Positions 13,169 to 51,330 of a stretch of DNA of 64,000 nucleotides are shown here, piece after piece. The translations under genes and the position numbers were made by a program. The notes beneath the pieces are model-generated. The model was not told the origin of the DNA. It ran no database searches and worked only from the letters and a program-made list of their open reading frames with translations. The stretch covers positions 1-64,000 of IMG/VR virus record IMGVR_UViG_3300048597_000634; one strand, written 5' to 3'. The first letter of the stretch is position 1, and the number at the start of each line of letters is the position of its first letter.

Positions 13169-16100
13169 TTATTCAGCTTTAGACTCAAGCCACTTGCGGT
13201 AGCTCAGGTCTTTGTTGCCTTGGGCTTGGTAGAACCAATGCAAGTCTTCAGGTCCTTCAAAGTTGAAGTAGATGTCAGACGCTTTGGTAAACCGAGAACA
13301 GGCAACTAGTAGCCACTGGGCATCGTTCAGGGCTACTTTGTATGTCTTATGCTCACCGTCTTCTTCAAAGATGAATTGACGGTTCTTGTCTTTAGCTTTC
13401 CACTCTTGGCTAACGGAGATAACACCTTCATTAGTGATGGTCATCCCTTGTACGCTGTGCCCGGTGGTGGCGAAGTCGGGGTGGATGGGTAGTTGATAGA
13501 AAGCGCCGGGGGATTGTCCATCCTTACCAGCACCTTCGAAGCGTTCTACACCGATGTTTAGCTCTTTACCGTCTTCGAATAACACCCATACGGACTTCTT
13601 ACAGAGTTTAGTGATAAACCCACGGGAGCCGTTAGATGCTTCTAGAACGCCGTCTTTCTTACGGTTCTTGCGGAGCTTAACAGGCATACCTACAGCAAAT
13701 TCCATTACCGGTGCGATGGGGCTGAAGGCATATACCCAACCAGGATAGCGGTCGCCATTGATAGATACAGGACCGTTATTACCATGTATTTCAGCACGAT
13801 ATACCTTTGTTTCGGTACCCATAGCGCGGGTCATACGGCGATTAATGCGCTCAACCGTGACGTTATTGAAGCGTATATGGGTGGTATTAAGATTATCGCT
13901 GGGCTTTAAGCCTTCTTCAGCACAAAGACGGAAGCGCTCTAATAACACGCCGGTAATCTCATTAGTCTCAGACAAATGGCGGAGGGCGGCGGCGAGTTCA
14001 GGGTCTTCAGCTTGACGCACGTTGGTCTTGAGGTTGACACAACGGAAGTTCTCAATGATGTTTTCGAGGGTGCCGTTACAACCTTCAATGACAGCGCGCT
14101 GCCAGAAGTCCCGGGCACCTTTACCAATTACTTTGAGTTGGTCACCGTCGCCGGCGAGGATTACCTGGATGCAAGGATTGTGGTAGTAAAGGATATTCCA
14201 GATAACCCACAGCATGCGGGAATCTAACATGGATACTTCATCTAAGACGAAGTGTACCCGTTGACCTTCTTTTTCACCGTGGAGCATCACGCTTAGTTCG
14301 TCATTAGCTTGACCACGGGCAATCATGCGTTGACTCCAGGCGTAGGGAGTCATGGCGGCGGCGTCTTTCTCATCAAAGCCGATGCCTAGACCTAGAACGG
14401 AATTGAAGGTACCGTAACCGTCTAGGTTTTCTATATCAAAGCGGACGCCCATGTTCATTGCAGCACGACCGGTGGTGGCCGTAACGATTACTTTGTCGCC
14501 TAAGCCTAACCAATGGTTAATCATGGTTTCTAGGGCGTAGGTCTTACCGGTACCAGCTTCCCCGGATAGGAATATGTTGTCACCGGTGCATGCTGCGTTG
14601 AAGAACCGTTTTTGGCAGTCAGTGGCGCCGGTGTCATCTACTGGGGGGCAGGGGATGGACCGGGCTTTCTTTTTAGCATCGATTAGGTTCTTGGGCTCGG
14701 ACTTTTTTGCGTAGCCTTTGATTAGGTTGGCTACTACATCATCAGCGGATTGGGTTTGGGTGGGGGCGGGGGCGGGGGCGGGGGCGGGGGCGGGGGTATT
14801 CACGGCGGCTACTTCATCAACTTTATTGCTGATGGTAGCCTTTTTATTTGTCGTAGGGTCGGCTGCCACTTTAGTGGCGAACATAGCCATATTTGCCTGA
14901 TAGTCACCCTCTTCAGGAATGAACATATCCTCATCGGCACTAGGTGCAACTTGAGGAGTCACTGGGGCGGCGGCGGGTTGGCTAGCCGTTTCAGCCAATG
15001 ACTGACGAAGTGCATTCTCCGCGGGAGTGAAGGTGATGGTGTGGGCAGCGGCAGGTGCCGGGTCAGGCTTCTTAGGAGAATCATCTTTGGTTACTGGTAC
15101 ATTACCTTCACCGTCGTCAGATTCATCCTCATTAGGTTCATTACCGGTTACGTCTCCTAACATAGCGGCGAACTCAGGGGTGAGTTTAGCAACAACGTCA
15201 GCTAGTTTAGCCGATAACTTGGCCTTTTTGTCTTCCAACTTCTGCAGCGCCTTAGCCTGTTCTTGTTGTTTAGCTAACAAGGCTTGCGCTTTAGCCAAAC
15301 GGGTCTCAAGGGAGACAATCTCAGCCTCAACAGTGGCTTGCTTAGCCAAGAAGATTTTGTCTTCCGTGGGGGCTACTACAGGCGTAATAACTGCCGGGGT
15401 GGGCGCCGCCATGACTTGCGTCGGGGCCTCAGCAACCACTACTGGAGGAGGACTCATCAAAACAGCAAATGCTTGTTGAGCTTCCACCATATCATCGGTA
15501 GATTGCTCATCTTCGTCGATTACAACAGTGGGGGCGGGGGCTTCACTAACCATCATTTGAGCCATCATTGCCTGACTCATGGCAATTTCCTCCGCAGAGG
15601 GAGGGGTTATATCCATATATTCCTCGGGTTGATAATCATCGTAGATATTCTCGAAGGGGTCTACTAAATCAAAGTCATCAGAATCGATAACCATATAGTT
15701 AGTAGGGCTAACTTCTACATCCACGACGGTTTGCTTTAATTCAACTAGGTCAACATCACCCACACGAGCAGTTAATTGAGACTCATAGTGAGCCACCAAG
15801 TCTGCGCCGATGGTGTAAGTCAACGCAGTGTTAGGCGCGGGACCTACAACTAAGTCACCCAATACTTCAGGGTCAGCCATATCCATAAGCAACTGCAAGC
15901 AATGACTTTCAGATACAGCGTTAGCCCATACTTCATGGGTGGATACGCCTTTGACTAGGTAGTCAAGGGTGACGCGGGTCATGGCTTTGTGGTTACGGAC
16001 TTTCTCTTCACTGGCAACATTGGTGCTGTTGAGAGGTCCATGGTTAAAGCCGTGCCATTTAGCACGACCTGCTTCGGTTACCAACATGGCAGCGGCAACG

Positions 16101-19100
16101 ATGAACTGTACAACCCGGCGGTCATCCCGTTGCAGGTCGAATAGGAACATAGATTGTTGCTTAACCGTTCCGTTAGCATAGGATGCCAACCAGAATGCGG
16201 TAGCCATGGCGCCGGCTTGGTCAGGGTTAACACCAGCTTCAGATAGAATGTCAACCAGGTGGGCGGTCTTCTGCTCACGGAAGTAGCGGGCTTTAGACTC
16301 CGCCTCTAGGTTATGGTCGGTACCATTACCATCTACTTTATCGATGTGGATTAACGGAGCATGCCATACTGGGGCGAACTTCGCTTCCATTACAGCGCTT
16401 AGCAAACCCCAAAGTTCCCAACCTAAGTCGTTAACGGCACCTAATACATACTCATAGATATCTGCACAGGCAGTGACTGCGTAGTATGACTGAGGACCGA
16501 CGAAGGGTTTGAACATCTCAGGGATTTCCAACCCAGCTGCCTCGAATACACCGCCTTTAACCATACCGTTGAGGATATCAACGATGGCCTCGGTCAAGCG
16601 ATATACCTTGTAGCTGACACCAACCTGCTGGCTTTGTAGAATTAGAGAGCGCCAGTTGGTGGTGTTATAGGTAGTAGCAAGGACTAGGTGTTTACCTACA
16701 ACTACGCCGCTATCATATTTAACTGTTAGAAGACCAGCTCGGAAGAAGATATTAGCCTTCTTAGACAGGCTGGGGGCGCGCAAATGGTCACCCAAGTAAA
16801 CTTCTTTGATGGCCTGGGCACCAGGACCACCGGCACACATATCACAGCTATCCCATGCCTTGTCTTCGGTAGACACTAGACCACGCAAGCCAGCTACTTC
16901 AGTAACCAGGAACGTAGCACTAACGCCGTCACCGTCAGAGTCACCTTTGGTGATGTCAGTCATAGCAATGACCGAGACCCCGATGGTATAAGGATAGGGG
17001 TTAGCCATCACATCCTTCTTGGTCAATGGGTTATACACCCAAGGACGGTCGAAACAGTAGAAGGTATTGGCGTAGGCTTCTTGAGACTTAGGCATACGAA
17101 GTACCCGAAGCACAGGACCGTCTTTGATTGGACTACGGGTCAAGTGGTTAAACGCTTCACAACGTTCGGGTAGATCCCATACTGATTCACCATGGGCTTT
17201 ATAGTCAGCCCAGGTAGGTACGGCACGGAGGTCTAGTCCGTAGTGCTTAGCCACGCGGCGGGCATTAGCCCATTGGTCATCACCTTCATGGAGCAACATC
17301 ACTCCAGTGGGTAGGTTAGGCATGGCGATTACTTTACCGCCGAAGACCTCACCACCGGAAATAAACTTACGGACACCCTCAGAGGATGCCCAAGACTCCA
17401 TACGACCACACAACTGGTTGGCAATGATTCCGATGCTGCGACCGTCTAAGGAACCCGACAGGACTTCAGCTAAATACGCCTGGAACAAACCGCTAGCAGT
17501 GCTATGACTATTGTCTTCAGCACTACGACCATTGAGGTAATACAGGAACGGAGTCCAGACCTCGATGGATTTACTGACGGTGTAGACTTCACCGCTATCG
17601 GGGTCTACTTTGTATTCTTTGCGGGAAGCATCGATTTGAAAGATGTAGTCTTTGAGGGCATCACATAGCCCACCGAAGTTGGATACATTGCTGACATCAG
17701 CATTACCCAAGACGGCTTTAAGCGTATCGATAATCTCAGCATTGGGTATCCAGGTTGCGGCGCCGGCGCCCTTCTTACCTTCTTCCCATTTGCCTAATTT
17801 GACAACAGTACGGTCATCAATAGCTTTACTGAGCCCAGAGTAAGCACTCAGATGCAGCATTTTAGCCCGCCACATAGAGTTAGTTTTACCGGATAGACGT
17901 TGGTGACTAATTAGGTCTTTAGCCAACTCATCATTACCAATACCCCACGCATCGGTCATAGCCCGGAGGGAACGCATACAGACGTCCATCTGCCCGGAGC
18001 TGTTATTGTTGATGCCCTGACGAGTAGTAGCCGCTTCATAGAGGACTACATCGTAGATGGGGCAGTTCTTACGACCAACCAACATGGTGGACTGCTGAGC
18101 TACTTTAGCGACGCGCCCGGCTTTATTGATGAACAACACGAATGCATTGTCCTTGTCATTGGTGAAGCACTTGTAAGTGTAGTCTTCAGTAACACCGGCA
18201 GCCAGGGACATTACCAAGGCACGAGCTTCCTTAGCGTCGTCAATTAGACGCCATGAGTCGATACCACGGTCAGACATGTCAGTATAGAGACGGTCAATGG
18301 CGTAGCCGAAGTCACCGTGCTCTAGCTCTTCCCACATCGTCCAAACGTTTTCACGCTTGAAGTAGTTGAAGAAGGCAGTTTGAAGCTGCGTGTACAAGGG
18401 TTGAGCAACCATAGATACATGGTCTTCCACCAAATACTCCAGGTGGCGACGACCTTCTACTAATTCGTTGATGTCTTTAGCCATCTCAACCATGGCTAGG
18501 AACCCTGGCTCTTTACAGTCAGGGTTTAGTACCAAGGTGGCGCCGATGACGCTGATTAGACAGCCATCAACGTCAATCTTCATGGCGTCTTGCAAATACA
18601 CCGCGTCAACTGTTTTGCCTGCAGCATTAGGGAGCTTCAGGAATGTAGATTTGACGGGCATTAGGTTAGCCTTAGCCACAGAAGAACGAATCTTGGCTTG
18701 ACGTTCCATGGGTGTGACTTTGAATTCCACCTCCAAGTTCTTGCCAGTAATCTCAGGTGCTACGTGGACACGAACCCATTCCAAGATACCGTCGCCGTTA
18801 TTACCTTCATAGGCGAAGGGTTTACTGGGGGCTAGCTCATCATCGGTATGGACGTTACATACCACAGAACCACCATTGCCGTGGACATACACAGCGGTTT
18901 GAGGGTAGAAGTAGTAGTATTCGATACCACGTACCCGGTGAACCTCGGTCACTAACTCAACATCAGCCAATACACACTCAGGCTGACGGAAGTCCACTGC
19001 CAACTCAGGGCGAACTAAGTGGATATCATCAGCACCGAAACCGACGCCGGGTTGTACTTCGATAGCCCGTTGGGGAATCTCGAAGTTAGCCTGCTCGATG

Positions 19101-23059: not shown

Positions 23060-23295
23060 CGGTTGCGTAATTTTCAATAATGACAAAACCTATACTGAGA
23101 GGGCGTTTTAGGTCTTAAGCGCAACTATTACGTCCGAACACCTAAGAAAAGCGGCTTCCTCGGAGGCTTAAAAGTGTACGCTTGCGTAGACGCCAATATC
23201 TCTAAAGTATATAGCTGGCTTCGGTTACAGCTCCAAGCTTAGTTGGTTAGAAGCGTACACTAGAGGCTCGTCGATGATATATAGTCGGCTGTCTC
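23060..23295. ncRNA. Candidate structured non-coding RNA between two terminators
   Basis: No ORF. 11-bp inverted repeat AGTGTACGCTT (23173-23183)/AAGCGTACACT (23251-23261), C(UUCG)G-capped hairpin, further hairpins, and a promoter-like motif at 23286-23301. Confidence 0.4.
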
Positions 23296-23304
23296 TCTCA
23301 TAAA

Positions 23305-23340
23305 AGTGACCCCAGTTTCCTTTTGGATTCTGGGGTCACT
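23305..23340 (-). terminator. Intrinsic terminator after the HExxH gene
   Basis: AGTGACCCCAG / CTGGGGTCACT 11-bp inverted repeat. Confidence 0.75.
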
Positions 23341-23347
23341 AGCTTAT

Positions 23348-23806
23348 TTAGAACGGGGGTGGGTTCCCGCAAAGGCTCGCCAAGAAGTCTTTAAACCCCT
23401 TGTTAACTTCATAGTTATCCCCCCAGTCGACCGCCCACTGGGCTAGACAATCAACTATCATTTCCTCTTCCAGTGCCCACTTATCGTAGGCGTGGAAGCG
23501 GACTTTGAAATCCACCTCCCGGAAATACCGACGCACAAAGGCGTTACCCTTGTAAGTCAGCTTACCCGTATGGCACAGGTGGTGACCCAGTTCATGGATC
23601 ATTGTCCGAAAGCCCCGCCCGGTGCCATACCGAGCGTGGTTGATGAAGATTAAGTGCTCGCCCGGGAAATACATCCCGTTCCACTCCTCAAGGGAGCAGT
23701 GGAACCGGGCTCTCGCCCAGTCGCCTGAGTCTGGCGTTATCCACCGGATACTGAGGTTGAAATTGTTTTGTAGATACTGAGACCACTCGTAACAACGATT
23801 AGCCAT
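23348..23806 (-). CDS. Zincin-like metallopeptidase (ImmA/IrrE/SprT-like)
   Basis: TMIHELGHHLCH (HExxH) and a downstream EEMIVDCLA third-ligand-like motif. Confidence 0.7.
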   Translation of the reverse strand: MANRCYEWSQYLQNNFNLSIRWITPDSGDWARARFHCSLEEWNGMYFPGEHLIFINHARYGTGRGFRTMIHELGHHLCHTGKLTYKGNAFVRRYFREVDFKVRFHAYDKWALEEEMIVDCLAQWAVDWGDNYEVNKGFKDFLASLCGNPPPF

Positions 23807-24050
23807 ATTTAACTCCTGCCGAGTGTATCGGTTGTTTGGACGTTAAAAATATGGCCGGGTAGGGCTATCGAGGTGCGGTTGTCTGGGTGCGGCTGTGGTG
23901 GTCTGACAGTGTTGAATACTGTCCTGAGGAAACCGAATTACACGCGAGACACGCCTACACTGGTAGGATCTGGCACTTAAGCACTATGTCTGCGGATAAT
24001 CGGCTGTTATCCTCATAAAAGAGGGGGTAACCTCTATAAGTTACCCTCTT

Positions 24051-27752: not shown

Positions 27753-27760
27753 ATTATGTT

Positions 27761-41300: not shown

Positions 41301-44300
41301 TTAATTTTCGGGCAACCTTAAACTCTTCTTGCTTACGCTCTGCCTTTTGTTCCGCCGTAACGTCTGCGTAGCTCTTAGCTTCTTCTAAAGGTACCTTGGC
41401 TTCTACTGGCGTCGACCTAGGTTTTTTACCTAGAGCTCTGTTTATAACTTCATAGGTACCGCTGACTAAACTATCAAAACTTACTTGACCTTCTCTGGTC
41501 TTTCTAGTTACGACCTTCTTCCCTTTATTTGACTTTCTGATATCTGAAGCACGCTGCGCTTTAGCCCGAGCTTTGTCTAACCAACTCTCTCCTATATAGT
41601 CATTATCAGTAAAAGATAGAATTTGCTGAACGTTACTAGACAGAAATGATTTCACCCTCTTATATAACTGTAAATCTACAGAGGCTGTATCCCCTTCAGA
41701 TGCTTCTATTTGTTTAATTAGTAGGTCTATATCTAGCGTTGCTTCGTTATATCTATCAGTGCCGAATAAACTAGAGCTGGCGTCACTACTCAACTTAGTT
41801 AGGTAATCCTTAACTTCATATATGACCGACGCCTGACTTTTAGAAATAGAAACATCAGTTACTGGGGCAACATAAGACCCAATACGCTTGCCTACTGCCT
41901 TCTTGGTGTCCGTTATGACAGCTATTTGTTTTTGTAGCTCTTGCGCCGCTTGTAAAGCATCTCTGCTTTTGGCCTCATCTGTTATGGCAAACTGGTTAGC
42001 GACATCGTTTTGAATCTTTAGCTTCTCCTGTAAACTCTCCAGATTCTCAGCCAAAGTACGGTCTTGCCCTTCCGGCGACATACCTAACATGTCATTCCAA
42101 CTTGACAACTCAGACTGCAAATAGGCTATCTTATCGGTGCCCTTTGTCTCAATCGCCTCCGCTAGTTGAGCTTCCAAGTTATGTTTTTCCTTATAGTGCC
42201 CGATTAAGAACTTACGTTGGTCTGGGTCAACCAACAAGTATTTTTCCATATCTCTATTTTTAGGTGCTACGTCCGCCATAAATCGTAGATAGCCGCCAGC
42301 AGTAGTAACCCCAGATGCAGAGTCAAACCGCTTACCCAACGCCACCTCAGTAGCTCCTACTAAGAAACTATTCATAGCGATGAATGAAGTACCCATCATG
42401 TTTAGACGGTTACCAGTCGCCTGACGGATACTGTTCTCGTTTTGGAGAATGCTAATAGCAGTGACCTTAGACATCATCATCGCCTCTTGTAGGTCTAATA
42501 GCTGCTGCCATTCCTCTTGGGTCACACTGGTTGTCTTATTTTGTTTTTCGCCCAAGTAAGAGGAAATCAAGCCGGCTTCAACCTTGTCTATTAAGCCCTT
42601 AGCGGCGGATAGTTTGGACACTAGATTTTGTTGAGCCTCTAACGCGTCATGACTGCTGTTCTGGAACAACAAAGACATCTTCTCTAAGACGTCGAGCCCA
42701 AGGATTAGACCAGTATCGCTAAAGCGTTCACCTTTGACGTTAGTGTGATGCCGCAGTCGTATCTTGCCTACTTCAAAGGAGTCTACGGCGTAGGAGGACA
42801 AGGATATAAACTGGGTCTTTTCTAGGCTACGTTTAAGGCTTAATAGCCGTTCTTGTTGGGCAGTAAGATTACCGCGGGGATTTAGATTACCAGCCCCTAG
42901 ACCTAATACAGTTTTGTACATGCTCTTCATACCTTCTAGGTATGCTGCGCCGCGGTCTTGTGATTGAGCGTGTTGTATCTTTTGGTATATGTTGCCACCA
43001 GGCGCCGCCATCCTAGCTATCTCATCTGCCTTTAAGAATTTATTAGCATCCTCAGAGCCGCCGCGCATAGCTATAGAGAACCAAGTATCAGTCTCTGTGG
43101 GTTGTTGGGCTGACATGTGGTCTAAGTAGCCAATGATGCCCCCCTCTCTTGCAGGTTGTAAATCTATTAGTTCTTTTCTTACCTCTTCTAATTCGCTTCT
43201 GGTTTTTTCACGATAATCTAAGCGTGCTTCTGTAGTTGGGACAGCGCCAGACCTTCTGTTCTTTTTAGTATTCTTAACTCTACCCGGTATACGACCTTCA
43301 TATGACCTATTCTGAGCTCTGTATTTATCGGTCAACACATTTAAAAGCCCATCTTCACCTACAAGTACTGCATCTATAACAGTCATTAGCTTTTCTGCAC
43401 TAAGCACATCGTTGCCTGTAGGGTTAGTTAGGCTACTCTCCATAAAAGCCAAGGACTTCGATATTTCGCCTACTTTAGTTTTATCAGCGCCTTTTATACC
43501 TATTACTTCTCTTGATATGCCTTTTAACTCACTAACAATGCGTAGTAGTGTTTTAGCATGTTTACCAGACGCGTCATATCTTACAGCGGAAGCGCCACGC
43601 AGTAACGCTGCATCTTCGTCACTCACACGCTCATTAAAGATACCGTCCTTTAATATCTCGTCTTTATTCCTGTCACCTTTTATCACCTCAGCTATGAAGT
43701 AATCTATCTGCTTCTTATAGGCGCTCTTCTCTGCTGCCAAAACCGCACTTATACGTTTAGCATCCTCCTCAGTCTGCCCTGACGCCATGGTGTAGCTAAG
43801 GTAATCATTTAACCCCGCCGATAATTCTTTAGTTACTCTCGCAACAGTACGCTGTCTAGTTATTCCAGCACTTAAACTGTCATACGTTAGGGTAGCTAAA
43901 GCCTTAGCTCGGTGCTCTAGTTCTGCCTCTGGGCTATCAAAATTCTTACCAGCGGGACCGTAGGCGATAGTGTTAATGCGCTGCATCATGTCTACTACGT
44001 CTGAGTCTCTCTTGCCGTCCTTAACACCGTCACTAACAAAGTCATATATATTTACACGGGAGAAGCCCACCTCGCTTTCTTCACCAGGTAGAGCGTTACG
44101 GTAAAGGCTATTGTAGTTAGCCAGGTAATCCCAGATGAATTGTTTAGACTGGGCGGCGGCACTCTGACCTTTAGGCTTACCTTTACGCTTAACCAACTTA
44201 TTAGTCTCATCTACTTCAACATCACCCCAGCGCCACTCGTTAATATTCATCAAGTCCATAGCCATCAGAGTCTCGCGCTGCTTGGCGTTAGGGATAGATC

Positions 44301-47300
44301 CGTAATAAGCCTTAGTAAGACTCATTAGGGCGTTTTGTACAGAGGTTAGGTCTGCAAATTCTTCTGGGGAGTAGGTATATTGTTTGAGTTGCCGTTCTGT
44401 CATAGAGCGGCTTAAGTGACCTTCAAGGGCTGTAGAGTCTTTACTACCTGCCGGGGTGCTAATCTTACTAAAATTAGTCTCCATTGGGATAGTTATGGTG
44501 CGGGCTTGCTGAATAGCCGCTGTAATACCTTCAAAGACAAGCTCTACTTCCTTGAGTGCTCTGTATTCGCCGTCAGTCAAAGCATCATCTGACTCACTGG
44601 ACTTAATTTTATTTAAGATGCCTTTTATCAGCTCTTGGCTGGGCAAAGAGTAACCCATACGCTGGGCTTGAACACGCATAGCATCTTGTATAACGGTGCC
44701 GCCCCGGTCTGCTAAACCACCATATGCCTCTACGGCACTATAGAAACCAATTAAGGCAGAGAAGCTGGAGCCCACAGGCTGGCTTTTAGCACGATCAGCG
44801 GTGTTTATGGTCTCTAACATGCCGGGCTGGAATGAGCTTAGTAACTTACCGAACTCAGAGTCAGAGGAAAAGTTGGTAATGCCAATTTCCCGTAGACGGT
44901 CTTCTAACTTCAGTAGTTGTGAGCCCATATCACTGCGTTTGATAACTATCCTACGCAGAGTGCTGTCAAATTTAGTCCTTAATGCCTTCTGTGCATCGCT
45001 AGCGAATTCGCCAGTTGAGGCGATCAAGTCATCTATGACGCTGCGGTGGGTCATATTTCCCTTAGTGATAGACTTAATAGCCTCAAGGTAGGGGTTATAC
45101 TCGCTCTTGTCTAAGTCTTGAATGTATTTATGCTGCTCACTTTGGTACATGGTCTGCATAGGGGACCATAGAGCAGTGGTAGCAAAACGTTTCTCTAAGT
45201 TAGTCTGTTGATTAAGCTCGGGTGACAAATCAAATCTACTCTTAGCTGTTCCAGCTCTAGTTAAGAAGCCATCTATGTCTAAGTCTTGATTAAGTATGCG
45301 GTTTACGGACTCCATATCACCGCCAGATATCTTATGGATTTCCCCAGCTATCAGGTATGCTTCCCTGCGCTTCATTTCTATTTGTCTTTGCCTTCTACCT
45401 TTCTTGTCTTCGTCGGCGCCTAAATTGAATAAGTTATTAAGGACAGTCAAGACAGAATCACGGGCAGCCTCATACTTCTTATCTACTTCTGCCAGACCCT
45501 CGTCGCCACGAATTAGGCTTAATGGAGAAGTAAAGAGACTCTGACCGCTGAGAATAACTTCACCCAAAGCTCGGGTTGTTCTTAATTGTTCTGGGGTCAA
45601 GTCCCGATAAATATCGGCGCTGGCTTTAGTCAAGAAGGATAATAACCCTACTGGCTTAGTATCAAAGTCTTCTATGATTACTCCGCCTCTAGACTTCTCA
45701 CTAAAGGTATAGTCAAGTAGACCTTTAGCTGCTCTTGTTAGGTTATCTCTAGCTTTTTGTACTTCTGTGTCTTTAGCGTCACCCAATGCGACAATAACTT
45801 GGTGTAATAAAGCAGACTCTACGCTTTCTGAGTCACTAGTCCACTTACCAAAACCACCTAAAGCGCTAAACATGGCTAAGGAAGCCGAACCAGGTGCACT
45901 AGAAAAGGTCTTAAACCCTTTACTGACATCTGTTTCTAACCCCATTAGGCTTTTCTTAGCTCTTAAAGAGGCGGCGTACTGCTTACCATCGCCGTTATTT
46001 AAAGTAGAGCTTAACCGGTCATAGAGCATAGCTAGGTTATTATCCCCACCTATGGTCTTAGCGTCGGCGTTAATAAAGAGCATCGACAGGGCTAGAGCTA
46101 CATTCATCCCACCACTAGTCTTATCTGTCAAGCGCTTATAGATACCGCTTTCTTGGCGGTCACTCAGCATCATCAAACCAATCTCAAAGTTGAAGGCTTT
46201 AACCTGAGAAGGGCTAATCATGGAGTAGATGTCTTCTGCGCTTACTTCTCTACTGTCATTACCAGACTTAACAGAGGAAGGCAGTAAGTTTATAGACTCT
46301 TGTCCCATTAGACCTCTAGCCGCCTCGAATAGGGCTAGCTGACCTCCTTTCATGGGACCTTTAGGGATAATCGAGCCGGCCCGCATACCACTCATAAAGT
46401 CTTCTACGTTGTAGAATCTGGTGTCTATGGTGGCAGTATTGCCGGACATGGAAGTGACTGTTACTTCCCCTAGGACACTGATAGAGTTCAGTTCATCGCC
46501 CGTAATAGCTGGTACCCGAAGCTGCATTGGCTGAGCGTGCCCTCCATCGTAGGACATAAAGCCCCACATCTTAAAGGCGGCGTCGCCGGGGTCTAGGTCA
46601 CCTACTTTAGCGCCGGTGGTGTTCACTGTTGACACCTCACCGACTTGGCGCCCGCCTTGATAGGCACCACGGTTTAACACATAGCCTACCTGACCTGTTT
46701 TATGGTCAGTTATAACCCGTATACCTTGGTTCTCTTCCCGGACCTTAGCCACCGCTCCTTTGTAGATAGCGTCTATCTGGGCGGCGTCTATGTCTTGGTC
46801 AATCTTTTTAAATGCGTCTATGATGCCAGCTCTAATTCCTTGTCTAGTTACAGCGCCCTCAGTGTCCACGTTGAAGTTAATAGCTGGCAGATTCTTAGCA
46901 ACGGCTACTTCTTTAATAGTCAGCTGTAGTTTTTCGTTTAGTTGCTTATTAAGGTCAGCGATTACCTTCGTGTGTTGAATAGTGGTATCCCTGGCAATGA
47001 ATACAGTACCGGGCTGTAGGTATTGTTGGACGGAACTTTGCAGTGCTGCTGGACCAATCATGCCGCCGCTGAGAGTGATGTTAGTCTGAACCGGGTGAGG
47101 TTTTAATAGCTTCATGCCGTATTCATACTCGGACCTTCTATACCCTGTGTTCTGGATGCCATAGTCGCTGAGTTGGGTAGCCCCGGCAATAAGAATGCTA
47201 AGGCGCGGGCGCTCACTACCCATATACCCCTTACCTACTGCTCTATCATCAATAGCTATCTCCTTAGCTATTTGGAGCATCATTGCCCGCTCTAAATCAT

Positions 47301-50300
47301 AAATCTTCTTCTTATCTACGCCCTTACGGGGGTCTCCCTCTCTAGCAAAACGCTCCTCCATCATCGCTATTAGAGCGTGATATTGTTGGGCTGGCATGCT
47401 ATCTAGTAACCGACCACCAATGATATCTTCAGGGGCATCAAGAAAGTTCTTCTTGCCACTACCCTTGCCAGCGTCGTAGTCAGAGTATTTACCGTTAAGA
47501 CCTAATGAATAGGAATAATCAATGAACTCCCTGCTTGCGTCATACATAGGCCTGGTGGACAGCAGGTTTTTCATCCGCTGCATGATTTGCTCAGTCTTGG
47601 CGTAGGGGAAGTAATAGAGCAGGTCGTATTCTTTAGCCTCCTCCTCTTCTTTAGTGCCAACTTCAGACCCGTACTTTGGATTAAAAGTTTGAGCTTCTAG
47701 CGCTTTAGTTACTTTATCGACGGCATCACCTTCTACGCCCATCTCTTTTAATAGACGTGCTGACCGTTCTTTATACCCTTTACGGTCTATAGCCTGTAAC
47801 GTAGGCATAGTGTTAGCTAGCCCTAGCATGCTATAGACAACTGGAGCGCCGCCTTGAATCTTAGTAAGACCGCCTATCTTCTCAGTAAAGGATTGGTGTT
47901 GTGCTCTACCTACAGCTTTTCCTACTGTGCGGAGATATTGCCCTCCGTCGGGTGAACCTAACATTTCACCATGGCTAAGAGGGTATGGGTTAAGAATAAG
48001 CCCCCCTATCCTACCGTCTACCAGGGAAGGGTCTATGCCTATACCAGGAGACACTAACCGGAATAAGTCCATAGTTTCCGGCGTAAGACCAACTACAGGT
48101 TTAGAGTGTAGGGATTGCCCATGGCTGTAGTTTTCTGTATGTGGTTGGGAATAGGCGTCTACTTGTCTAGAGTAAGATTCACTATAGCCAGAGGCTACGG
48201 TATCTCTGTAGATTTGCATGCCTACTGGGGTAGCACCGAAGGCTTGCATAATTATGTCGTTATAGCGCCCAGTGAAGCCTGAGGTATAGTCGCGGGCATC
48301 GTCTGGTCTTAACCCCACAGACTTCTCCATCATCATGCTGAAGTTATGGACTAGTCTACTTGCTAAGTCTTGGGCGTTAGCTTGTCTAGAGCCGGGGATG
48401 ATTTGGTTGAATAAAGTACCTATTTCACTGCCCCGCTGACGCATAACATCGGATTCAGGGCCGGAATAACGTGGGATTATGTCTGATTGTCCAGACACGC
48501 CGGCTAAATCACGCTGCAGCAGTGTTAATACACCCTCAAGATTACCTTCCTTCTGTATGAGGTTAAGTAAAGACCCTAGACCTTGTTCTCTAGCAACCAG
48601 TACCTTGTGTATTTCTGAGTCTGGTGTAGAATCACCGTGCTTGTTATATAGGTAAAGACTAGACACTCTATCAGCCAGGGTACCTTCTAAAGCCTTCTTC
48701 ATCACATCTGACCCTAGTGCTTCGTAAGTATAGGCAATACCCCGCACTTTAGTCTCGTAATTCATGCTGGTACGCATAGTACTGAGGAAGCCGCCTAATA
48801 CGTCTAAGGCGTTGGCTTCATAGCTGCCTTGTGGTCCTAACTGAGCGTTCTCTACTGTGCGGTCTATTTCGTTGTAGCGGATGAAGTTGAACGTGCTGTC
48901 AGTAGCGTTTTCAAAGACCGCCCCGGTTAGGAATCGCTGGGTCTTGTTAATGTAGACCATGGGGCTTTCTATTACTGTCATAGCGCCGCCCGGTCCAGAC
49001 TGAACTGACTTCCGCTCAGACCCAATAGTCAAGCCAATAGAGTAGTCTTTAGCGCCCATATTAGGCTGGGCAATGCTTATTTTTAGTCCAGTAAGACGGT
49101 AGCCGGTGGAAGACTTGGTATCTAAGATATATTCTTTTTTGTATCGGAAGGGCGCGGCTGAGGCGTCATCTGCAGTAGCCTCTTTACCACCCATCCTTTC
49201 TATCATCTCTATCGCACTGTTAACAAACTCAGCCTTACCCTTTTGTTGTACTTGGGTGCCCTGATATCGGTGCCTCAAGCTTTGTCCATAGCGCCCTAAT
49301 ACACCACCAGAGTCGGGCTTTTCTTCATCAAACCTACCAATACCGTAGAAGTAATTATTCTTAATACGTTGCTGGTCTGCAGCGGATAGTAGTCCTAAAG
49401 AGTCACCGCGGAAGAAAGCAGATACTTCGATGTTATCTGTGGTGCTTTCCCTATCTCTGGGTTTTAAGGCTTTCTCACTGAAGTTAGCGGAGCCGAGAGT
49501 ATATTCCAGTAGGTCGCCGGCGGCACTGAACATGGCCATAGACTTACTGTGCATATACTGCGTAGGCATCAACGTAAATGCACTTTCACCACGCGCACCT
49601 GGTTTTAATAAAGACTCGACAAGGTCGTATCTCTTCTGTTGTCCTTCGTCTAGGGTACTACGGTTTACTTTAGAGAACTTATCAAGTAGGTCAAATAGCC
49701 CTTGATTAGACCCCATACTGGAGCCAGACACTCCTATCTTGAGGTTGCCCTTTGATGCTAGTTTTTGAAGGTTTTCTATGTCAGCGCCGTCAAATAGCGT
49801 ATCTTCAAACTTACCACCCCGACCTATAAGAGCTTGCTCAAAGTATTGAGCAGTGATGACCAGCTTATTAGAGTCTTCAGCAGCAGTCTTAAACATGCGG
49901 CTAAATTGCCCCTTAATCTCTTGATTGGCGAAAATAGTGCGGTTCTTCTCATTTACGCCTGCTGCCGATGCACTTTGTATGTTTTCCCTAAAGCGCTGAA
50001 AGAAACTAGTCGAAGCTGATATATCAGAGAGACTAGTAATAGCTGTGTTGTTACTTATTTGGTCTCTGGTTACTTTAATGAGAGCATCGGCCGCTGCTTT
50101 AATCTCAGATGACACGCGGTTAAAAGACCCCAACTTGTCCTCATCTACCGGTCTATTAATTAAGACTAAGTCTTCTACTGTATTTGACTTAGCTAGGGTG
50201 TTAGTTAAGTTCTGCGTGCTGATGAAGAAAGACTCGATCTGCTCAGTTTTAGCGACAAGCTTACCCTCTTCATCTATAACTCTTTTATTTTCATACCAGT

Positions 50301-51330
50301 AACCCAACTTGGCGTGGACACTGCCGCCTGGCATTTGTAGCCCGCCGAGCTCTAACTGTCTATTATTCCTCTCAGCCAGCGTTTGAGCTGCATAGATACT
50401 AACATCATTGCCACCATAGATACCCATAGGGTCAGAGCCTTCTTCCTGAGTACCGTAACCAGCAGATAACACTTGTGCCGAAGATATTCGTTGGGTGACT
50501 AACTCAGTTCTACCTGTGCGTTCAGTAATAGCGGTCATGAAGCCAGCTTCTTGAACTTGAAATATAGACCCTCTAAAGCCCAACCCAGACCGCTCTTTGT
50601 CAGCAAACATGTTGTAGTAGTCCTGGGTAGTAGGTCTACTCATGTAGCCTTCTGGTGTGGCGTAACTGTCAGAAGTTAGTTTGAGTTGTCTACTGAACCT
50701 ACCATCGCTGTCTATAGACTCAGCAAGGCGGTTACCTTGGAACCGGGCGTTGTTGTCGTAATAGCTAAAGGTGCGTTCTGACGCTTCGTCTAAATTCAAC
50801 CCTGAGCTACCTATAGCCGAACCGAACCCACGGCGGCTAACATTCTGCTTGAACTCTTTAGAAAAGTCTTTAAGCGCCTTATACGGGTCTTGTGACCTAG
50901 TGTGGACGTCTTCTACAAATTGGGAGGTGATAGAGTGCCCAGCGACGTTGGTTCTTAAGCGATTCCAGTGGGCTTGTTGCTCTGGAAATGCTGTGCGTAC
51001 ATTACTCTCTGTCTCTAAAAATTTATCTACTAACTCTTTGGTTATTACATATTGTGTTGTTTCACCTCTTTCGTCTACAACTTCACGGATAGCTTCTACT
51101 AACCGCCAAGAAAATGCGCTGGCGGTCATAGCCGGGCCTTCGGCAGCTAACTTATCTTTTACTGCTTCAAGTACTTCTTCGCGACCAAGTAGCTCTATTA
51201 AACCTCGTAGAGCGGCGTCTGCTTGTATATCAAAATCTGACACTATGATTACGTCTCCGTGAGAGAGGCTATAGTCCCACTTTACTTGCAAAAAAGAACC
51301 CGGCTCTGGGCGGAGTCGGGCGGCGGGCAA
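35305..51330 (-). CDS. Giant protein (5341 aa) in the tape-measure position: putative ejected virion two-barrel RNA polymerase with an N-terminal tandem PLD/nuclease-like module
   Basis: HAK (50308-50316)...STQNL and HSK (49543-49551)...GSANFS...NIE. Beta-like SGMRAGSIIPKG...DIYSMISPSQVK (about 46200-46390), IAGRQGSP (RQGSP at 40579-40593), FMGLGDYDGDSY (GDYDGD at 40384-40401). Hydrophobic Gly/Ala segments near the C-terminus. Lies directly after a frameshifting chaperone-like gene. Confidence 0.7.
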   Translation of the reverse strand: MPAARLRPEPGSFLQVKWDYSLSHGDVIIVSDFDIQADAALRGLIELLGREEVLEAVKDKLAAEGPAMTASAFSWRLVEAIREVVDERGETTQYVITKELVDKFLETESNVRTAFPEQQAHWNRLRTNVAGHSITSQFVEDVHTRSQDPYKALKDFSKEFKQNVSRRGFGSAIGSSGLNLDEASERTFSYYDNNARFQGNRLAESIDSDGRFSRQLKLTSDSYATPEGYMSRPTTQDYYNMFADKERSGLGFRGSIFQVQEAGFMTAITERTGRTELVTQRISSAQVLSAGYGTQEEGSDPMGIYGGNDVSIYAAQTLAERNNRQLELGGLQMPGGSVHAKLGYWYENKRVIDEEGKLVAKTEQIESFFISTQNLTNTLAKSNTVEDLVLINRPVDEDKLGSFNRVSSEIKAAADALIKVTRDQISNNTAITSLSDISASTSFFQRFRENIQSASAAGVNEKNRTIFANQEIKGQFSRMFKTAAEDSNKLVITAQYFEQALIGRGGKFEDTLFDGADIENLQKLASKGNLKIGVSGSSMGSNQGLFDLLDKFSKVNRSTLDEGQQKRYDLVESLLKPGARGESAFTLMPTQYMHSKSMAMFSAAGDLLEYTLGSANFSEKALKPRDRESTTDNIEVSAFFRGDSLGLLSAADQQRIKNNYFYGIGRFDEEKPDSGGVLGRYGQSLRHRYQGTQVQQKGKAEFVNSAIEMIERMGGKEATADDASAAPFRYKKEYILDTKSSTGYRLTGLKISIAQPNMGAKDYSIGLTIGSERKSVQSGPGGAMTVIESPMVYINKTQRFLTGAVFENATDSTFNFIRYNEIDRTVENAQLGPQGSYEANALDVLGGFLSTMRTSMNYETKVRGIAYTYEALGSDVMKKALEGTLADRVSSLYLYNKHGDSTPDSEIHKVLVAREQGLGSLLNLIQKEGNLEGVLTLLQRDLAGVSGQSDIIPRYSGPESDVMRQRGSEIGTLFNQIIPGSRQANAQDLASRLVHNFSMMMEKSVGLRPDDARDYTSGFTGRYNDIIMQAFGATPVGMQIYRDTVASGYSESYSRQVDAYSQPHTENYSHGQSLHSKPVVGLTPETMDLFRLVSPGIGIDPSLVDGRIGGLILNPYPLSHGEMLGSPDGGQYLRTVGKAVGRAQHQSFTEKIGGLTKIQGGAPVVYSMLGLANTMPTLQAIDRKGYKERSARLLKEMGVEGDAVDKVTKALEAQTFNPKYGSEVGTKEEEEAKEYDLLYYFPYAKTEQIMQRMKNLLSTRPMYDASREFIDYSYSLGLNGKYSDYDAGKGSGKKNFLDAPEDIIGGRLLDSMPAQQYHALIAMMEERFAREGDPRKGVDKKKIYDLERAMMLQIAKEIAIDDRAVGKGYMGSERPRLSILIAGATQLSDYGIQNTGYRRSEYEYGMKLLKPHPVQTNITLSGGMIGPAALQSSVQQYLQPGTVFIARDTTIQHTKVIADLNKQLNEKLQLTIKEVAVAKNLPAINFNVDTEGAVTRQGIRAGIIDAFKKIDQDIDAAQIDAIYKGAVAKVREENQGIRVITDHKTGQVGYVLNRGAYQGGRQVGEVSTVNTTGAKVGDLDPGDAAFKMWGFMSYDGGHAQPMQLRVPAITGDELNSISVLGEVTVTSMSGNTATIDTRFYNVEDFMSGMRAGSIIPKGPMKGGQLALFEAARGLMGQESINLLPSSVKSGNDSREVSAEDIYSMISPSQVKAFNFEIGLMMLSDRQESGIYKRLTDKTSGGMNVALALSMLFINADAKTIGGDNNLAMLYDRLSSTLNNGDGKQYAASLRAKKSLMGLETDVSKGFKTFSSAPGSASLAMFSALGGFGKWTSDSESVESALLHQVIVALGDAKDTEVQKARDNLTRAAKGLLDYTFSEKSRGGVIIEDFDTKPVGLLSFLTKASADIYRDLTPEQLRTTRALGEVILSGQSLFTSPLSLIRGDEGLAEVDKKYEAARDSVLTVLNNLFNLGADEDKKGRRQRQIEMKRREAYLIAGEIHKISGGDMESVNRILNQDLDIDGFLTRAGTAKSRFDLSPELNQQTNLEKRFATTALWSPMQTMYQSEQHKYIQDLDKSEYNPYLEAIKSITKGNMTHRSVIDDLIASTGEFASDAQKALRTKFDSTLRRIVIKRSDMGSQLLKLEDRLREIGITNFSSDSEFGKLLSSFQPGMLETINTADRAKSQPVGSSFSALIGFYSAVEAYGGLADRGGTVIQDAMRVQAQRMGYSLPSQELIKGILNKIKSSESDDALTDGEYRALKEVELVFEGITAAIQQARTITIPMETNFSKISTPAGSKDSTALEGHLSRSMTERQLKQYTYSPEEFADLTSVQNALMSLTKAYYGSIPNAKQRETLMAMDLMNINEWRWGDVEVDETNKLVKRKGKPKGQSAAAQSKQFIWDYLANYNSLYRNALPGEESEVGFSRVNIYDFVSDGVKDGKRDSDVVDMMQRINTIAYGPAGKNFDSPEAELEHRAKALATLTYDSLSAGITRQRTVARVTKELSAGLNDYLSYTMASGQTEEDAKRISAVLAAEKSAYKKQIDYFIAEVIKGDRNKDEILKDGIFNERVSDEDAALLRGASAVRYDASGKHAKTLLRIVSELKGISREVIGIKGADKTKVGEISKSLAFMESSLTNPTGNDVLSAEKLMTVIDAVLVGEDGLLNVLTDKYRAQNRSYEGRIPGRVKNTKKNRRSGAVPTTEARLDYREKTRSELEEVRKELIDLQPAREGGIIGYLDHMSAQQPTETDTWFSIAMRGGSEDANKFLKADEIARMAAPGGNIYQKIQHAQSQDRGAAYLEGMKSMYKTVLGLGAGNLNPRGNLTAQQERLLSLKRSLEKTQFISLSSYAVDSFEVGKIRLRHHTNVKGERFSDTGLILGLDVLEKMSLLFQNSSHDALEAQQNLVSKLSAAKGLIDKVEAGLISSYLGEKQNKTTSVTQEEWQQLLDLQEAMMMSKVTAISILQNENSIRQATGNRLNMMGTSFIAMNSFLVGATEVALGKRFDSASGVTTAGGYLRFMADVAPKNRDMEKYLLVDPDQRKFLIGHYKEKHNLEAQLAEAIETKGTDKIAYLQSELSSWNDMLGMSPEGQDRTLAENLESLQEKLKIQNDVANQFAITDEAKSRDALQAAQELQKQIAVITDTKKAVGKRIGSYVAPVTDVSISKSQASVIYEVKDYLTKLSSDASSSLFGTDRYNEATLDIDLLIKQIEASEGDTASVDLQLYKRVKSFLSSNVQQILSFTDNDYIGESWLDKARAKAQRASDIRKSNKGKKVVTRKTREGQVSFDSLVSGTYEVINRALGKKPRSTPVEAKVPLEEAKSYADVTAEQKAERKQEEFKVARKLMADDISGRFKELDKGVKQQTKTLRTQRVSQVDKVAQASQMGAMYDKLLSFSKTGKDIDRDTVHDILKVLKYSGDQITKGELTVTDDTKSTIISAFDSLSKGKTLDSHVIQLLELGTEEQTSMTLKEQRTSFNSFLTDLLSKAKSNALAADKAYEKLQKWHKLVSDYALAYAEGEGDSSKARTFTEVELLQAYESSGKSRTLVELQLITGQEVTKENRNEILAKVDAHFLRSDLIAGRQGSPYGSAAGPRGVASALSALQGVTMEEMRKRGQLVNSLFTPDESADNTLMMISAFGFQFMGLGDYDGDSYQAALSSITKAQSTIAQTNEQLKTIEDSTNRLKNALKELVARKELAQAKQPKDLNEIDAIDKKIRTVERELNIVNSRAKQAKELNQRATKDLRDINREARETQQVKGDKAYKGLRSYVSSYLALPTYLFGDNVTNAQGEDVYQYGLHDNELAGTVKQYRDTISGYSDRADDTTNSVGAFAWLKEVDNKVSIDDKGRLSFDVEGMKASRGGAGGGTTMTVNQMVAAAEQWNQALIKEEIHQRIKGGSTLDEAAVRQKVIEDMQKMSIDDYMKKVAEFQNQSEAIFMSITTSSKIFSNVAGSQISPADLGSIQSIMGTTGGGLLGKVYNTVVPSAVTQMTDSLMNRMMSNDSVRADFLNSIEKLQQTNANIPQVDLAKTISAIADSLGSMTDTSGVPWELSMDRKEAKASTAYRFMLTTQQYLRDAALKPKGKVGLVEMASKFRLSNSAVQQIKSLGIAGMEEQDWSNIEGYDKLLQMQPAAAEEDVSRQYLEIISQDFLGARAGELLNYSRDKAGTNNSVQLDGDMTAFGMLKLLTDYTGSRAMTAEEMLESGHYSDALKATRDDLSERLTTHDAQVKEYLASKSSGDTDRIDAAKQALRSAGIKPEMVDRVLRSEQDGSWYIDNDAFVQNTIADLIGKFQSQFLGGSSVADDFKSTDPMATERTLYTHGLEVQVNEQTDPTQDPTYKIVRTADSDAILRKNAAYQMQDKLDAYNRKFNLSGDDALTVNDIEAGDVDWQLEAAAAKIKAGTKEKALSDLNRKLGLERNPDLRLTDVDASTLLGSGPENIQAELRRRLTRMSGVSDKDLTITANENLATSYLDIIEKSKSGTEADTLSAINKGRNADESFGSIEEARTWSEGIMQNETKLRSDLALLNSNDPDSRLRDVNRGRSVAFETVEDAKSDHERQIREIESRRKKATEVNRRLAAADGAFSTWNTATHGADAEADAFTSTMTGELNDRYNELSSNRSAIEAEAAGQDLSVNEVAATTFRTLQEVTVRNQADDLMDVMMKTKQLNQAVQGVVTDGQSEEFGAVKDALIDAQKLASLTVFESMEAMGSETVAQAQGIDSAKLNQASLAQAMSTGLTNVLESVRTYASSLGDGQEFDTKLGGAVMSFLSMGGVLPDQIQDVIDQNIAGQVGTVEGYASALETEDGRQQLASKLARYGGDDVDLTTGEGRLSAANLLVDGETNTLQTGVLKALMQAGVIDAIASGSGFTGHVAQWNDMMQDAIELGSINPEDLSQSGRHALDAAANAALPAYEWATSNKEPRFVATQDMADDFNKGLSDKGMTQELTAEQLTTLVNKEGTTSVLQDMGVDSAGERKILGKQLEQFRTQEVGPAPTVVTTMPTPTTPTSGGTDNDFGQRRVNPETLSIPAQHQALKTAITHAGENRQNREIARQQNETEQALRRNYGFTEALSILAIPTLFAAMQGDIPITEQVGGLVQDVFSSAITSGTFEQSASSLMLMDGKSEEDRAARLAQVRRASDNLQMARMKDYFRYYDSPTEALARGVLNETIYQGMGRLAAGAGTAIDMARGHGLDRKGNPILGEELTVGDSGLGRMVTEIGAGLLGRVVGGVLSGRPVNHGFYSATEDDFANELVAAAASAASQVVNFIADVTDEMWEGDPGEIKLDDGNLISMVDTDTGASLTYEVARPDKLLVGTALDTDEYLQIVEGDQNAISTYDELSA

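Follow-up and report, generated by a model that had tools for sequence, protein, structure and literature searches.

Two giant polymerase-like proteins encoded by a cyanophage-like virus

Does a cyanophage-like virus encode its own cellular-type RNA polymerases? The question arises from two giant open reading frames, genes A and B, in IMG/VR record IMGVR_UViG_3300048597_000634. We analysed positions 1 to 64,000 of this record, a 64-kb stretch hereafter called the window. The original observation was that both proteins contain, in the same order, a beta-like basic motif, an R-x-P motif and a GDxDGD loop. A sigma-70 gene and a repeated ATGA-N5-AYAGCCG element had also been noted. From this, a new, staged transcription system was inferred, consisting of an ejected virion RNAP (protein B), a non-virion RNAP-helicase (protein A) and a sigma factor that redirects host RNAP. 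We first tested if the underlying observation was correct.

The sequence features proved to be real. Both ORFs exist, encoding proteins of 3186 aa (A) and 5341 aa (B, with a TTG start). Each protein contains exactly one GDxDGD sequence, whereas composition predicts 0.0037 and 0.012 occurrences respectively. These are the only two hits in a six-frame search of the window. In homologs down to about 20-25% identity the loops are invariant or nearly so. An R-x-P element upstream of each loop is also conserved. In protein A this element is TRSPIKDGP, which is not necessarily the R-x-P originally meant. In protein B it is GRQGSP. A conserved basic motif lies further upstream in protein A. The sigma-70 gene is real but runs off the window edge. 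Pfam regions 1.2 and 2 are clear, region 3 is weak and region 4 lies outside the window, so that the full set of sigma-70 regions was not seen and membership on this criterion is left undecided. The best model is the cyanobacterial RpoD subfamily of NCBIfam (1e-61, below its curated cut-off). All features are listed in the table.

Table. Positions of features within the window. Residue numbers refer to proteins A and B.
Position (nt)	Strand	Feature	Residues or remarks
1..819	-	Sigma-70 family gene	Cut by the window edge
13169..22729	-	Gene A	Core plus Pif1-type helicase
13172..14632	-	A C-terminal SF1B (Pif1/RecD/Dda-like) helicase	
16400..18922	-	A core, candidate two-barrel polymerase module	~1270-2110
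16928..16945	-	A GDSDGD loop, candidate Mg-binding Asp triad	1929-1934
17114..17140	-	A motif TRSPIKDGP	1864-1872; family consensus NR(A/S)P(L/M)xxGP
18671..18694	-	A basic motif K-I-R-SSVA-K, candidate beta-like barrel residues	K1346, R1348, K1353
23286..28483	-	Array of hairpin + T-run + ATGA-N5-A(C/T)AGCCG cassettes	Between small genes upstream of gene A
23286-23301, 24001-24016, 25048-25063, 25783-25798, 27695-27710, 28468-28483	-	Exact motif copies	
24363-24371, 26771-26779	-	Core-only motif copies	
4448-4456	-	Further core-only motif copy	Outside the array
35305..51330	-	Gene B	Virion gene block
38431..40665	-	B conserved block 4	3556-4300
39094-39129	-	QQYLRDAALKPK in block 4	
40384-40401	-	GDYDGD in block 4	3644-3649
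40579-40596	-	GRQGSP in block 4	3579-3584
40666..41994	-	B hypervariable insertion	~3113-3555; absent in the shortest homologs
41995..42996	-	B conserved block 3	2779-3112; invariant IRQA..(D/N)RL
52774..58142	+	Head module diverging from gene B	
52774-54264	+	Mu-like portal	Pfam Portal_Mu
56847-58142	+	Major capsid protein	Pfam Phage_cap_E

We next sought to understand which family protein A belongs to. An exhaustive HMMER search returned 20 cluster representatives at E<=0.001. Of these, 17 are longer than 1,900 aa and 3 are short, probably fragments. Apart from three representatives (P0009, P0017 and P0023) they have the core plus helicase architecture. All members of the A and B families found here are unnamed metagenomic proteins. 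Megablast and tblastn searches of GenBank phages with A and B found no match. The extent of A conserved in the most distant homologs is the ~840-aa core. Across 19 sequences, down to about 20% identity, R666 and P668 of the alignment are invariant, as are G730, D731 and G734. Positions D733 and D735 are conserved in at least 90% of rows. The basic residues K147, R149 and K154 are nearly invariant in two family alignments. The C-terminal helicase is clear. It matches Pfam AAA_19, AAA_30 and PIF1 above their cut-offs and a PHROG Dda-like helicase (2e-40). The family profile matches Pif1 structures in the PDB at about 1e-30.

Structure prediction and fold comparison had been put forward in advance as the way to examine the two-barrel assignment. 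Hence, we modelled residues 1200-2300 of protein A with AF2. The model is fair (pLDDT 77, pTM 0.74). The Asp loop follows a short strand and helix and precedes a strand. Downstream, a 42-residue helix carries invariant residues. The basic motif lies in a beta-rich region but local pLDDT is below 50 and its proximity to the Asp loop was not measured, so that a second, beta-type barrel is neither confirmed nor excluded. In a Foldseek search of 350,542 PDB chains, RNAP beta' or Rpb1 chains ranked 1, 2, 4, 37 and 48, the best-ranked matches being to 4g7o_N, 6vjs_D, 6z11_D and 1twg_A. However, the best E value is 7.6e-3 and TM is about 0.1. Single-chain polymerase gp64 of Thermus phage P23-45 (8F72, present in the PDB sequence copy), gp96 of the same phage, QDE-1 and phi14:2 gp66 are not among the 50 top hits. 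The overall fold comparison did not decide the matter. The one strong structural match is to ORF65L of Microcystis phage MaMV-DC (E=4e-11, TM 0.43/0.54). This 1677-aa hypothetical protein has RTP…GDADGD, and its phage group (Ma-LMM01) is also the nearest by capsid protein. Sequence similarity is marginal (HHalign E=7e-4, probability 26%) and ORF65L was not scanned for a helicase domain. No RNAP role has been proposed for it; the Ma-LMM01 transcriptome study found host SigA-like promoters for all gene classes and no phage-specific motifs (PMC5780444).

Protein B belongs to a different family. Collinear homologs of 3055-5341 aa occur at 16 loci; a metagenome scan contributed only 3 of these B-type loci. 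The ~800-aa core carries RxG(A/S)P…LGDxDGD(S/T)(F/Y)Q…QQ(F/Y)LRDA.LKPK. In the 16 sequences, R387, G389, G445-D446-x-D448-G449-D450 and Q750/Q751/R754/D755/K759/K761 of the alignment are invariant, whilst P391 is nearly invariant. The core is split by the hypervariable insertion, and the distance from the start of block 3 to the motif ranges from 381 to 1327 aa across the family. In the shortest members the core is contiguous. No Pfam or PHROG domain was found in B. A precomputed PF25869 hit was not reproduced when overlapping pieces were scanned. The gene lies next to the portal and capsid genes here and at a second family locus (L002). At two others (L007 and L009) it is followed by genes for a BW3TFN (PF25691) domain protein and a PAAR protein. 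The same modelling test was applied to the compact core of family member L022; B itself (residues 2775-3974) was not modelled. The model is poor (pLDDT 51, pTM 0.28), predicted all-helical and below pLDDT 50 at the motif. Its Foldseek matches, only to alpha-solenoids, are meaningless. The presence or absence of two double-psi beta-barrels in B was thus left undecided, and its polymerase identity is unproven.

No sequence or profile method linked A or B to any known RNAP. A permissive Pfam scan (E<=10) of 10 A-family members hit no RNAP or RdRP model, and a Pfam scan of B at E<=0.1 was likewise negative. Single-sequence and profile searches of the PDB hit only helicases. No Pfam or PHROG hit to a right-hand, T7/N4-type polymerase domain was found in A or B. 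Comparison with RpoB and RpoC had also been named beforehand as a test. Hence, we used HHalign to compare the A and B family profiles with E. coli RpoB and RpoC, the P23-45 gp96 core and gp64. Nothing was found, and probabilities were below 1% for gp96 and gp64. This comparison evidently lacks power because it fails even for A. YonO and gp66 were not included in it, and no sequence comparison with either was made. BLASTP and HHalign found no similarity between A and B, which are not recognisable paralogs. A-type and B-type genes nevertheless lie on the same contig in four lineages. Two further IMG/VR scans for A-type partners on other large B-carrying contigs recovered only one more contig, but the patterns used were narrow and absence is not shown.

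We next examined the DNA motif. The full pattern has 6 exact copies, all on the minus strand. With up to one mismatch the window has 8 matches, and none of 100 shuffles reaches that number (mean 1.6). The core A(C/T)AGCCG occurs at 9 minus-strand intergenic sites, each after a terminator-like hairpin and T-run. Variant cassettes occur in the same position in a related phage (L001). Gene A is the last gene of this array of small, early-type genes, and the cassette nearest to it is at 23286-23301. The timing of expression was not examined.

Taken together, these data partly support the interpretation first offered. Protein A is probably a single-chain two-barrel polymerase fused to a helicase, and whether it transcribes or primes replication is open. 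Protein B sits in the virion gene block and carries a strictly conserved beta'-like loop, but its assignment as a polymerase is tentative. The link of the sigma gene to the two proteins is only co-location, and nothing shows which polymerase reads the motif. In the explanation that we favour, with a probability of about 0.55, a beta-like barrel of A supplies K-x-R-x4-K and a beta'-like barrel supplies NR(A/S)P…GDxDGD for Mg2+, with the long conserved helix in the bridge-helix position. The window is part of a roughly 205-214 kb cyanophage-like jumbo phage. Protein A would most likely be a non-virion enzyme, made early in infection, that synthesises RNA on phage DNA while its own 5'-3' helicase opens the duplex. 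Protein B would be an ejected or tape-measure-like protein and, by analogy with P23-45 gp96, a candidate virion RNAP transcribing the first genes to enter the cell. The cassettes upstream of gene A are the best candidates for promoters of one of these enzymes, and the phage sigma factor would direct host RNAP to other genes. Our data directly show the sequence signatures and their conservation, the family architectures, the co-occurrence of A and B, the gene positions and the model of A. Conversely, catalysis, an RNA rather than DNA product, packaging of B, the pairing of polymerases with motifs and the timing are all inferred; polymerisation of NTPs was not assayed.

The claim of a new transcription system overstates novelty. 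Thermus phage P23-45 already has a 5,002-aa tape-measure-fused virion two-barrel RNAP (gp96) and a non-virion two-barrel RNAP (gp64), with host RNAP transcribing late genes (Chaban et al., 2024; PMC10770324). As here, a giant protein of the virion or tail module carries a DxDGD loop, a second, separately encoded single-chain polymerase (here a probable one) sits among early genes, both are invisible to standard sequence searches, short dedicated motifs lie upstream of early genes and host RNAP is retained for other genes (here by inference). There are differences too. The core of B lies at about 52-80% of the protein, with its motif at about 68%, rather than near the N-terminus. B has no transmembrane or metallopeptidase domain, and its tape-measure identity is not established. 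A is far larger than gp64, which is 616 aa and stand-alone. Whereas gp96 and gp64 are paralogs, A and B show no similarity. The phage described here also encodes a sigma factor and its host is probably a cyanobacterium. As proposed for protein A, the single-chain RNAPs YonO (SPbeta) and phi14:2 gp66 have both barrels in one polypeptide; like it, they have a DxDGD loop and very low similarity to cellular RNAP. gp66 is a large virion-packaged protein. They have no helicase fusion and are much smaller (about 100 kDa and 2180 aa). Neither appears among the 50 top Foldseek matches shown. For cellular beta' (RpoC/Rpb1), the order and nature of NRAP…(N/G)(A/D)DxDGD match protein A. However, A is a single chain, the spacing between R-x-P and the Asp loop is about 60 aa rather than 34 aa, and there is no significant profile match.

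Other explanations must be considered for each component. Protein A could be a replication enzyme, a new type of primase-helicase that makes RNA primers or DNA at a fork opened by its own helicase. Consistent with this, all but three of the 20 representatives carry the helicase, which is of a type typical of replication and recombination. RNase H domains occur in two members, and DUF4326 and 2OG-oxygenase domains in others. The helicase and RNase H fit priming or replication as well as transcription. The two-barrel superfamily also includes a DNA polymerase, PolD (PMC10770324). No DNA polymerase or primase was seen in the window, although only 64 kb of about 205 kb is visible and a conventional primase may lie elsewhere. 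We consider this explanation unlikely. All characterised phage single-chain two-barrel enzymes (YonO, gp66, gp64 and gp96) are transcriptases (PMC5467207, PMC10770324), and gene A ends an array of small genes with promoter-like cassettes, as the nvRNAP gene does in P23-45.

For protein B, a purely structural role as a tape measure, inner-tail or ejection protein is quite possible, though not favoured outright. Its GDxDGD would then be a metal-binding or assembly loop; DxDGD-type loops also occur in Ca2+-binding proteins. The helical model, low Pro, Trp and Cys content, stretches resembling long helices or coiled coils, ruler-like length variation and lack of profile similarity to A, gp96 or gp64 all fit this role. 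One source names a homolog 'Lpp'. Conversely, three motifs occur in fixed order, invariant but for P391, within a core the size of a minimal RNAP, while flanking sequence diverges to about 24% identity. The context of the loop, between hydrophobic stretches, resembles beta'. Furthermore, gp96 was undetectable by sequence until it was assayed (PMC10770324), and B lacks the hydrophobic transmembrane segment or peptidase domain that many tape-measure proteins have. The cassettes, in turn, might not be promoters of a phage polymerase. They could be terminator-proximal elements read by host RNAP with the phage sigma, or RNA-level elements such as processing sites or 5'-UTR hairpins. In 5 of 9 copies, GCCG forms the 5' arm of a small hairpin just before the ribosome-binding site, every copy abuts a terminator-like hairpin and a sigma-70 gene is present. 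This alternative is doubtful. The motif has no -35/-10 architecture, the small hairpins are weak (z scores between -1 and -2) and absent in 4 of 9 copies, and confinement of the motif to one strand and one early-type gene array leading into gene A parallels the pre-early promoters of P23-45.

If confirmed, the two proteins would add two new, very divergent families to the two-barrel polymerase superfamily. To our knowledge, A would be the first such polymerase obligately fused to a helicase. This bears on how sigma-less single-chain RNAPs open DNA and on the proposed common origin of transcription and replication enzymes. The virion plus non-virion strategy, shown so far only in P23-45, would extend to large cyanophage-like phages, and there would be a testable reason to revisit transcription in bloom-relevant Microcystis phages. 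A bolder view, which we consider unlikely but not excluded, is that both proteins are active. B would be an ejected RNAP embedded in the middle of a giant tail or ejection protein, and A would link early transcription to replication priming. They would form a conserved two-polymerase module in a widespread clade of ~200-kb freshwater phages. The distantly related ORF65L-type protein would then mean that cultured Ma-LMM01/MaMV phages also have their own polymerase, contrary to the published view that they rely wholly on host RNAP.

Some further features of the window were examined. Scans for tRNA genes and Rfam families found nothing. The 572-aa protein downstream of the capsid gene has no match in deposited phages; hence, neither sheath identity nor myovirus morphology was established. 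We considered that the repeated motif might mark the start of small ORFs. This was rejected because reading frames and stops are not conserved, and real starts with ribosome-binding sites lie downstream. A second, AT-rich motif class turned out to be mostly terminator tails, with only 4 good sites.

Within the window, we identified a Mu-like portal, a capsid protein of the Phage_cap_E type, a TnpB gene and, at the left edge, a truncated sigma-70 gene. Hence, the window is phage DNA. The only deposited relatives of the capsid protein are cyanophages of the Microcoleus and Microcystis (Ma-LMM01/MaMV) group, at about 30% identity. The sigma gene best fits the cyanobacterial RpoD subfamily. 'Cyanophage' is therefore a fair inference. 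The source contig is about 205-214 kb. Neither giant gene had any DNA or protein match in about 50,000 deposited phage genomes. Feature positions are listed in the table.

Positions of the features described in the text. Positions are those of the window unless stated otherwise.
Feature	Position	Strand	Detail
TnpB/IS605 OrfB-type gene	2990-4270	-	OrfB_IS605, Cas12f1-like TNB and HTH domains
Core-only copy of the cassette motif	4448-4456		just upstream of the TnpB gene
AT-rich element	11323-11337, 12124-12138	+	intergenic, next to hairpins
AT-rich element	26822-26836, 54925-54939	-	intergenic, next to hairpins
(GGGGGC)n hexamer run	14762-14797		inside gene A
ATGA-N5-AYAGCCG, six exact copies	23.3-28.5 kb	-	
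Intergenic gap with tandem repeat	28271-28838		568 bp
Tandem repeat region	28652-28850		unit of about 22 bp
Head-to-tail copies of the repeat	28652-28741		four copies
Further ATTCCCCGTC sites	28786, 28841		two sites
Gene for a 240-aa protein	30344-31066	+	
Portal gene	52774-54264		Mu-like
Capsid protein gene	56847-58142		Phage_cap_E type
Protein A, K-x-R-x4-K	residues 1346-1353		
Protein A, (N/T)R(A/S)P(L/M)xxGP	residues 1864-1872		
Protein A, GDxDGD	residues 1929-1934		
Protein B, GDxDGD	residues 3644-3649		
MaMV-DC ORF65L	NC_029002.1 49224-54257 (locus L044, 325-5358)	-	1677 aa, annotated hypothetical

We first asked if the signatures that prompted this work were genuine. Both giant ORFs, encoding protein A (3186 aa) and protein B (5341 aa), exist and each has one GDxDGD sequence. 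Composition predicts 0.0037 and 0.012 occurrences, respectively, and these are the only two hits in all six frames of the window. All six exact copies of the DNA pattern ATGA-N5-AYAGCCG are on the same strand. With up to one mismatch allowed, the window has 8 matches, and none of 100 shuffles reached that number. Hence, the observation underlying the original prediction is confirmed.

We next sought to understand the nature of protein A. Standard domain libraries detected only a C-terminal SF1 helicase, and a family profile matched Pif1 helicase structures at about 1e-30. An exhaustive HMMER search with residues 1400-2350 found 20 cluster representatives at E<=0.001. Of these, 17 are longer than 1,900 aa (up to 4,532 aa) and 3 are short, probably fragments. 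A phmmer comparison of full-length A with these sequences revealed a shared architecture; a core equivalent to A residues ~1270-2110 and, in all but three, the helicase. Three elements are invariant or nearly so across the family, down to about 20% identity. These are K-x-R-x4-K, (N/T)R(A/S)P(L/M)xxGP and, about 60 aa further on, GDxDGD. This is the order and chemistry of the beta-type and beta'-type barrels of two-barrel polymerases, with basic residues in one barrel and NRAP…NADFDGD in the other. In E. coli beta', NRAPTLH is at residue 424 and NADFDGD at 458. In contrast to the core, low-complexity acidic and Pro/Ala-rich stretches between the core and the helicase are much less conserved. 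Here, the (GGGGGC)n hexamer run encodes a (Pro-Ala)n stretch.

Structure prediction, with a search of the models against solved polymerases, had been put forward in advance as one way to examine both proteins. For A, using a 19-sequence alignment, AlphaFold2 gave a usable model of residues 1200-2300 (pLDDT 77.2, pTM 0.74). In the model, the Asp loop follows a short strand and helix and precedes a strand. A 42-residue helix, about 85 residues downstream, carries several invariant residues (N826…Y844) and occupies the position of a bridge helix. A Foldseek search of 350,542 PDB chains ranked RNAP beta' first (T. thermophilus 4g7o_N, E=7.6e-3), followed by E. coli and M. smegmatis beta' and Pol II Rpb1. 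However, no hit reached E<=1e-3 and TM scores were about 0.1. We consider this ranking suggestive rather than proof. Among predicted viral structures there was one strong match; a large uncharacterised protein of Microcystis phage MaMV-DC (E=4e-11, TM 0.43/0.54). We take this BFVD entry to be ORF65L, because ORF65L is the only large hypothetical ORF that we found in that genome. ORF65L carries RTP…GDADGD at about residue 1352. The Ma-LMM01 transcriptome study found only host SigA-like promoters and no phage-specific motifs (PMC5780444). ORF65L may be an overlooked polymerase. The second-best structural match of the A core was BFVD entry A0A172Q021_2, from Acinetobacter phage vB_AbaM_ME3 (E=2.4e-5), which hints that related cores exist in jumbo phages of Proteobacteria.

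No sequence method linked A to known RNAPs. The same difficulty is reported for these families by the authors of the work on Thermus phage P23-45 (PMC10770324). Overall, we estimate a probability of about 0.8 that A is a two-barrel polymerase fused to a Pif1-type helicase. The analysis does not assign a product or a role to the enzyme; the replicative-type helicase, together with accessory domains in some family members, fits priming as well as transcription. These extra domains lie between the core and the helicase or near the N-terminus, in members P0018, P0010, P0006 and P0008 (loci L007/L009-L012, L008, L050 and L051). They are a 2OG-Fe(II) oxygenase plus DUF4326 (P0018), DUF4326 (P0010) and RNase H (P0008 and one other). 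The family behaves like a 'polyvalent' scaffold for nucleic-acid enzymes.

Protein B has no library domain and no hydrophobic segment. Our first searches found only three relatives. However, a distant A-family member, at locus L007, lies about 6 kb downstream of another giant gene, which is followed by genes for a BW3TFN (PF25691) domain protein and a PAAR protein. The product of this giant gene is a true B homolog (BLASTP 5e-29, HHalign 99.8%) with the same loop context. Scans seeded with the broader alignment raised the family to 16 loci, with complete ORFs of 3055-5341 aa. The proteins are collinear over five blocks. In the shortest members, blocks 3 and 4 abut to form a contiguous core of about 800 aa, which is the size of the minimal active fragment of P23-45 gp96 (residues 327-1124). 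In other members, an insertion of up to about 950 aa separates the two blocks. Three motifs are invariant; IRQA..(D/N)RL, then R-x-G-(A/S)-P followed 52-58 aa later by LGDxDGD(S/T)(F/Y)Q, and QQ(F/Y)LRDA.LKPK, which is about 300 aa further on in the compact members. The last of these recalls the beta' bridge helix (…DTALKTA at residue 785, 327 aa after the Asp triad), although this is a resemblance and not a test.

For B, the structural examination envisaged at the outset did not yield a reliable fold. The AlphaFold2 model of the compact core, built with 16 sequences, has pLDDT 51 and pTM 0.28, is almost all helical, and falls below 50 at the motif. Its Foldseek matches were generic alpha-solenoids. 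Profile comparisons with A, gp96, gp64, RpoB and RpoC returned nothing. B is therefore a candidate polymerase, and we hold this assignment only tentatively, as somewhat less likely than not. The main rival is that B is a purely structural ruler or ejection protein with a loop that binds metal.

We also examined the co-occurrence of the two genes. A-type and B-type genes lie on the same contig in four lineages. These are this phage, a 101-kb contig from the same sample, the L007/L009-L012 group of ~205-kb phages, seen in many samples, and IMGVR_UViG_3300046777_002658. The other large B-carrying contigs were not adequately tested. In the present phage, the motif core A(C/T)AGCCG occurs at nine minus-strand intergenic sites. 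Each lies directly after a GC-rich hairpin and T-run, between small genes in an array that ends with gene A. At two sites, the ribosome-binding site and start codon follow within about 40 nt. The related phage has variant cassettes (hairpin, then TATTTCATG…CCG) in the same place. A small second hairpin follows in 5 of 9 copies but is not significant. The arrangement is consistent with dedicated promoters placed behind terminators, although the enzyme that reads them was not identified.

The closest known system is that of Thermus phage P23-45 (PMC10770324). Here, gp96 is a 5,002-aa tape measure protein whose N-terminal part is a clamp-less two-barrel virion RNAP, and gp64 is a non-virion two-barrel RNAP encoded among the pre-early genes. 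[quoted passage not shown] Thus, the staged programme that had been proposed, with an ejected virion RNAP, a non-virion RNAP-helicase and a sigma factor redirecting host RNAP, is of a known kind. The phage studied here differs in several respects. There is no homology to gp96 or gp64; the core of B is central and split by an insertion, and B has no peptidase or transmembrane domain. A is fused to a helicase and is much larger, and there is no detectable paralogy between A and B. In addition, there is a phage sigma factor and the host is probably a cyanobacterium. In the literature searched, we found no paper describing these families or an RNAP-Pif1 fusion. Of six family members that we looked up, none is named in a public source, except for one labelled 'Lpp'. 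Taken together, the data support the proposed interpretation in part; support is strong for A as a polymerase-helicase, polymerase identity has not been proven for B, and the transcription programme is inferred.

Further elements were apparent in the window. An AT-rich element, GGTAAATAAAAAGAA (on the other strand TTCTTTTTATTTACC), recurs in intergenic regions and probably represents terminator tails rather than a second promoter class. The TnpB gene sits inside the phage genome. The 240-aa protein has a weak N-terminal match to UvrC and DEDD-exonuclease-associated models (E about 1e-6, far below their cut-offs). We suspect a GIY-YIG-type nuclease domain. The gene is on the opposite strand from the surrounding early-type genes. 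Finally, the tandem repeat (TAATTCCCCGTCCA…) looks iteron-like, and so may be a replication origin or a protein-binding array.
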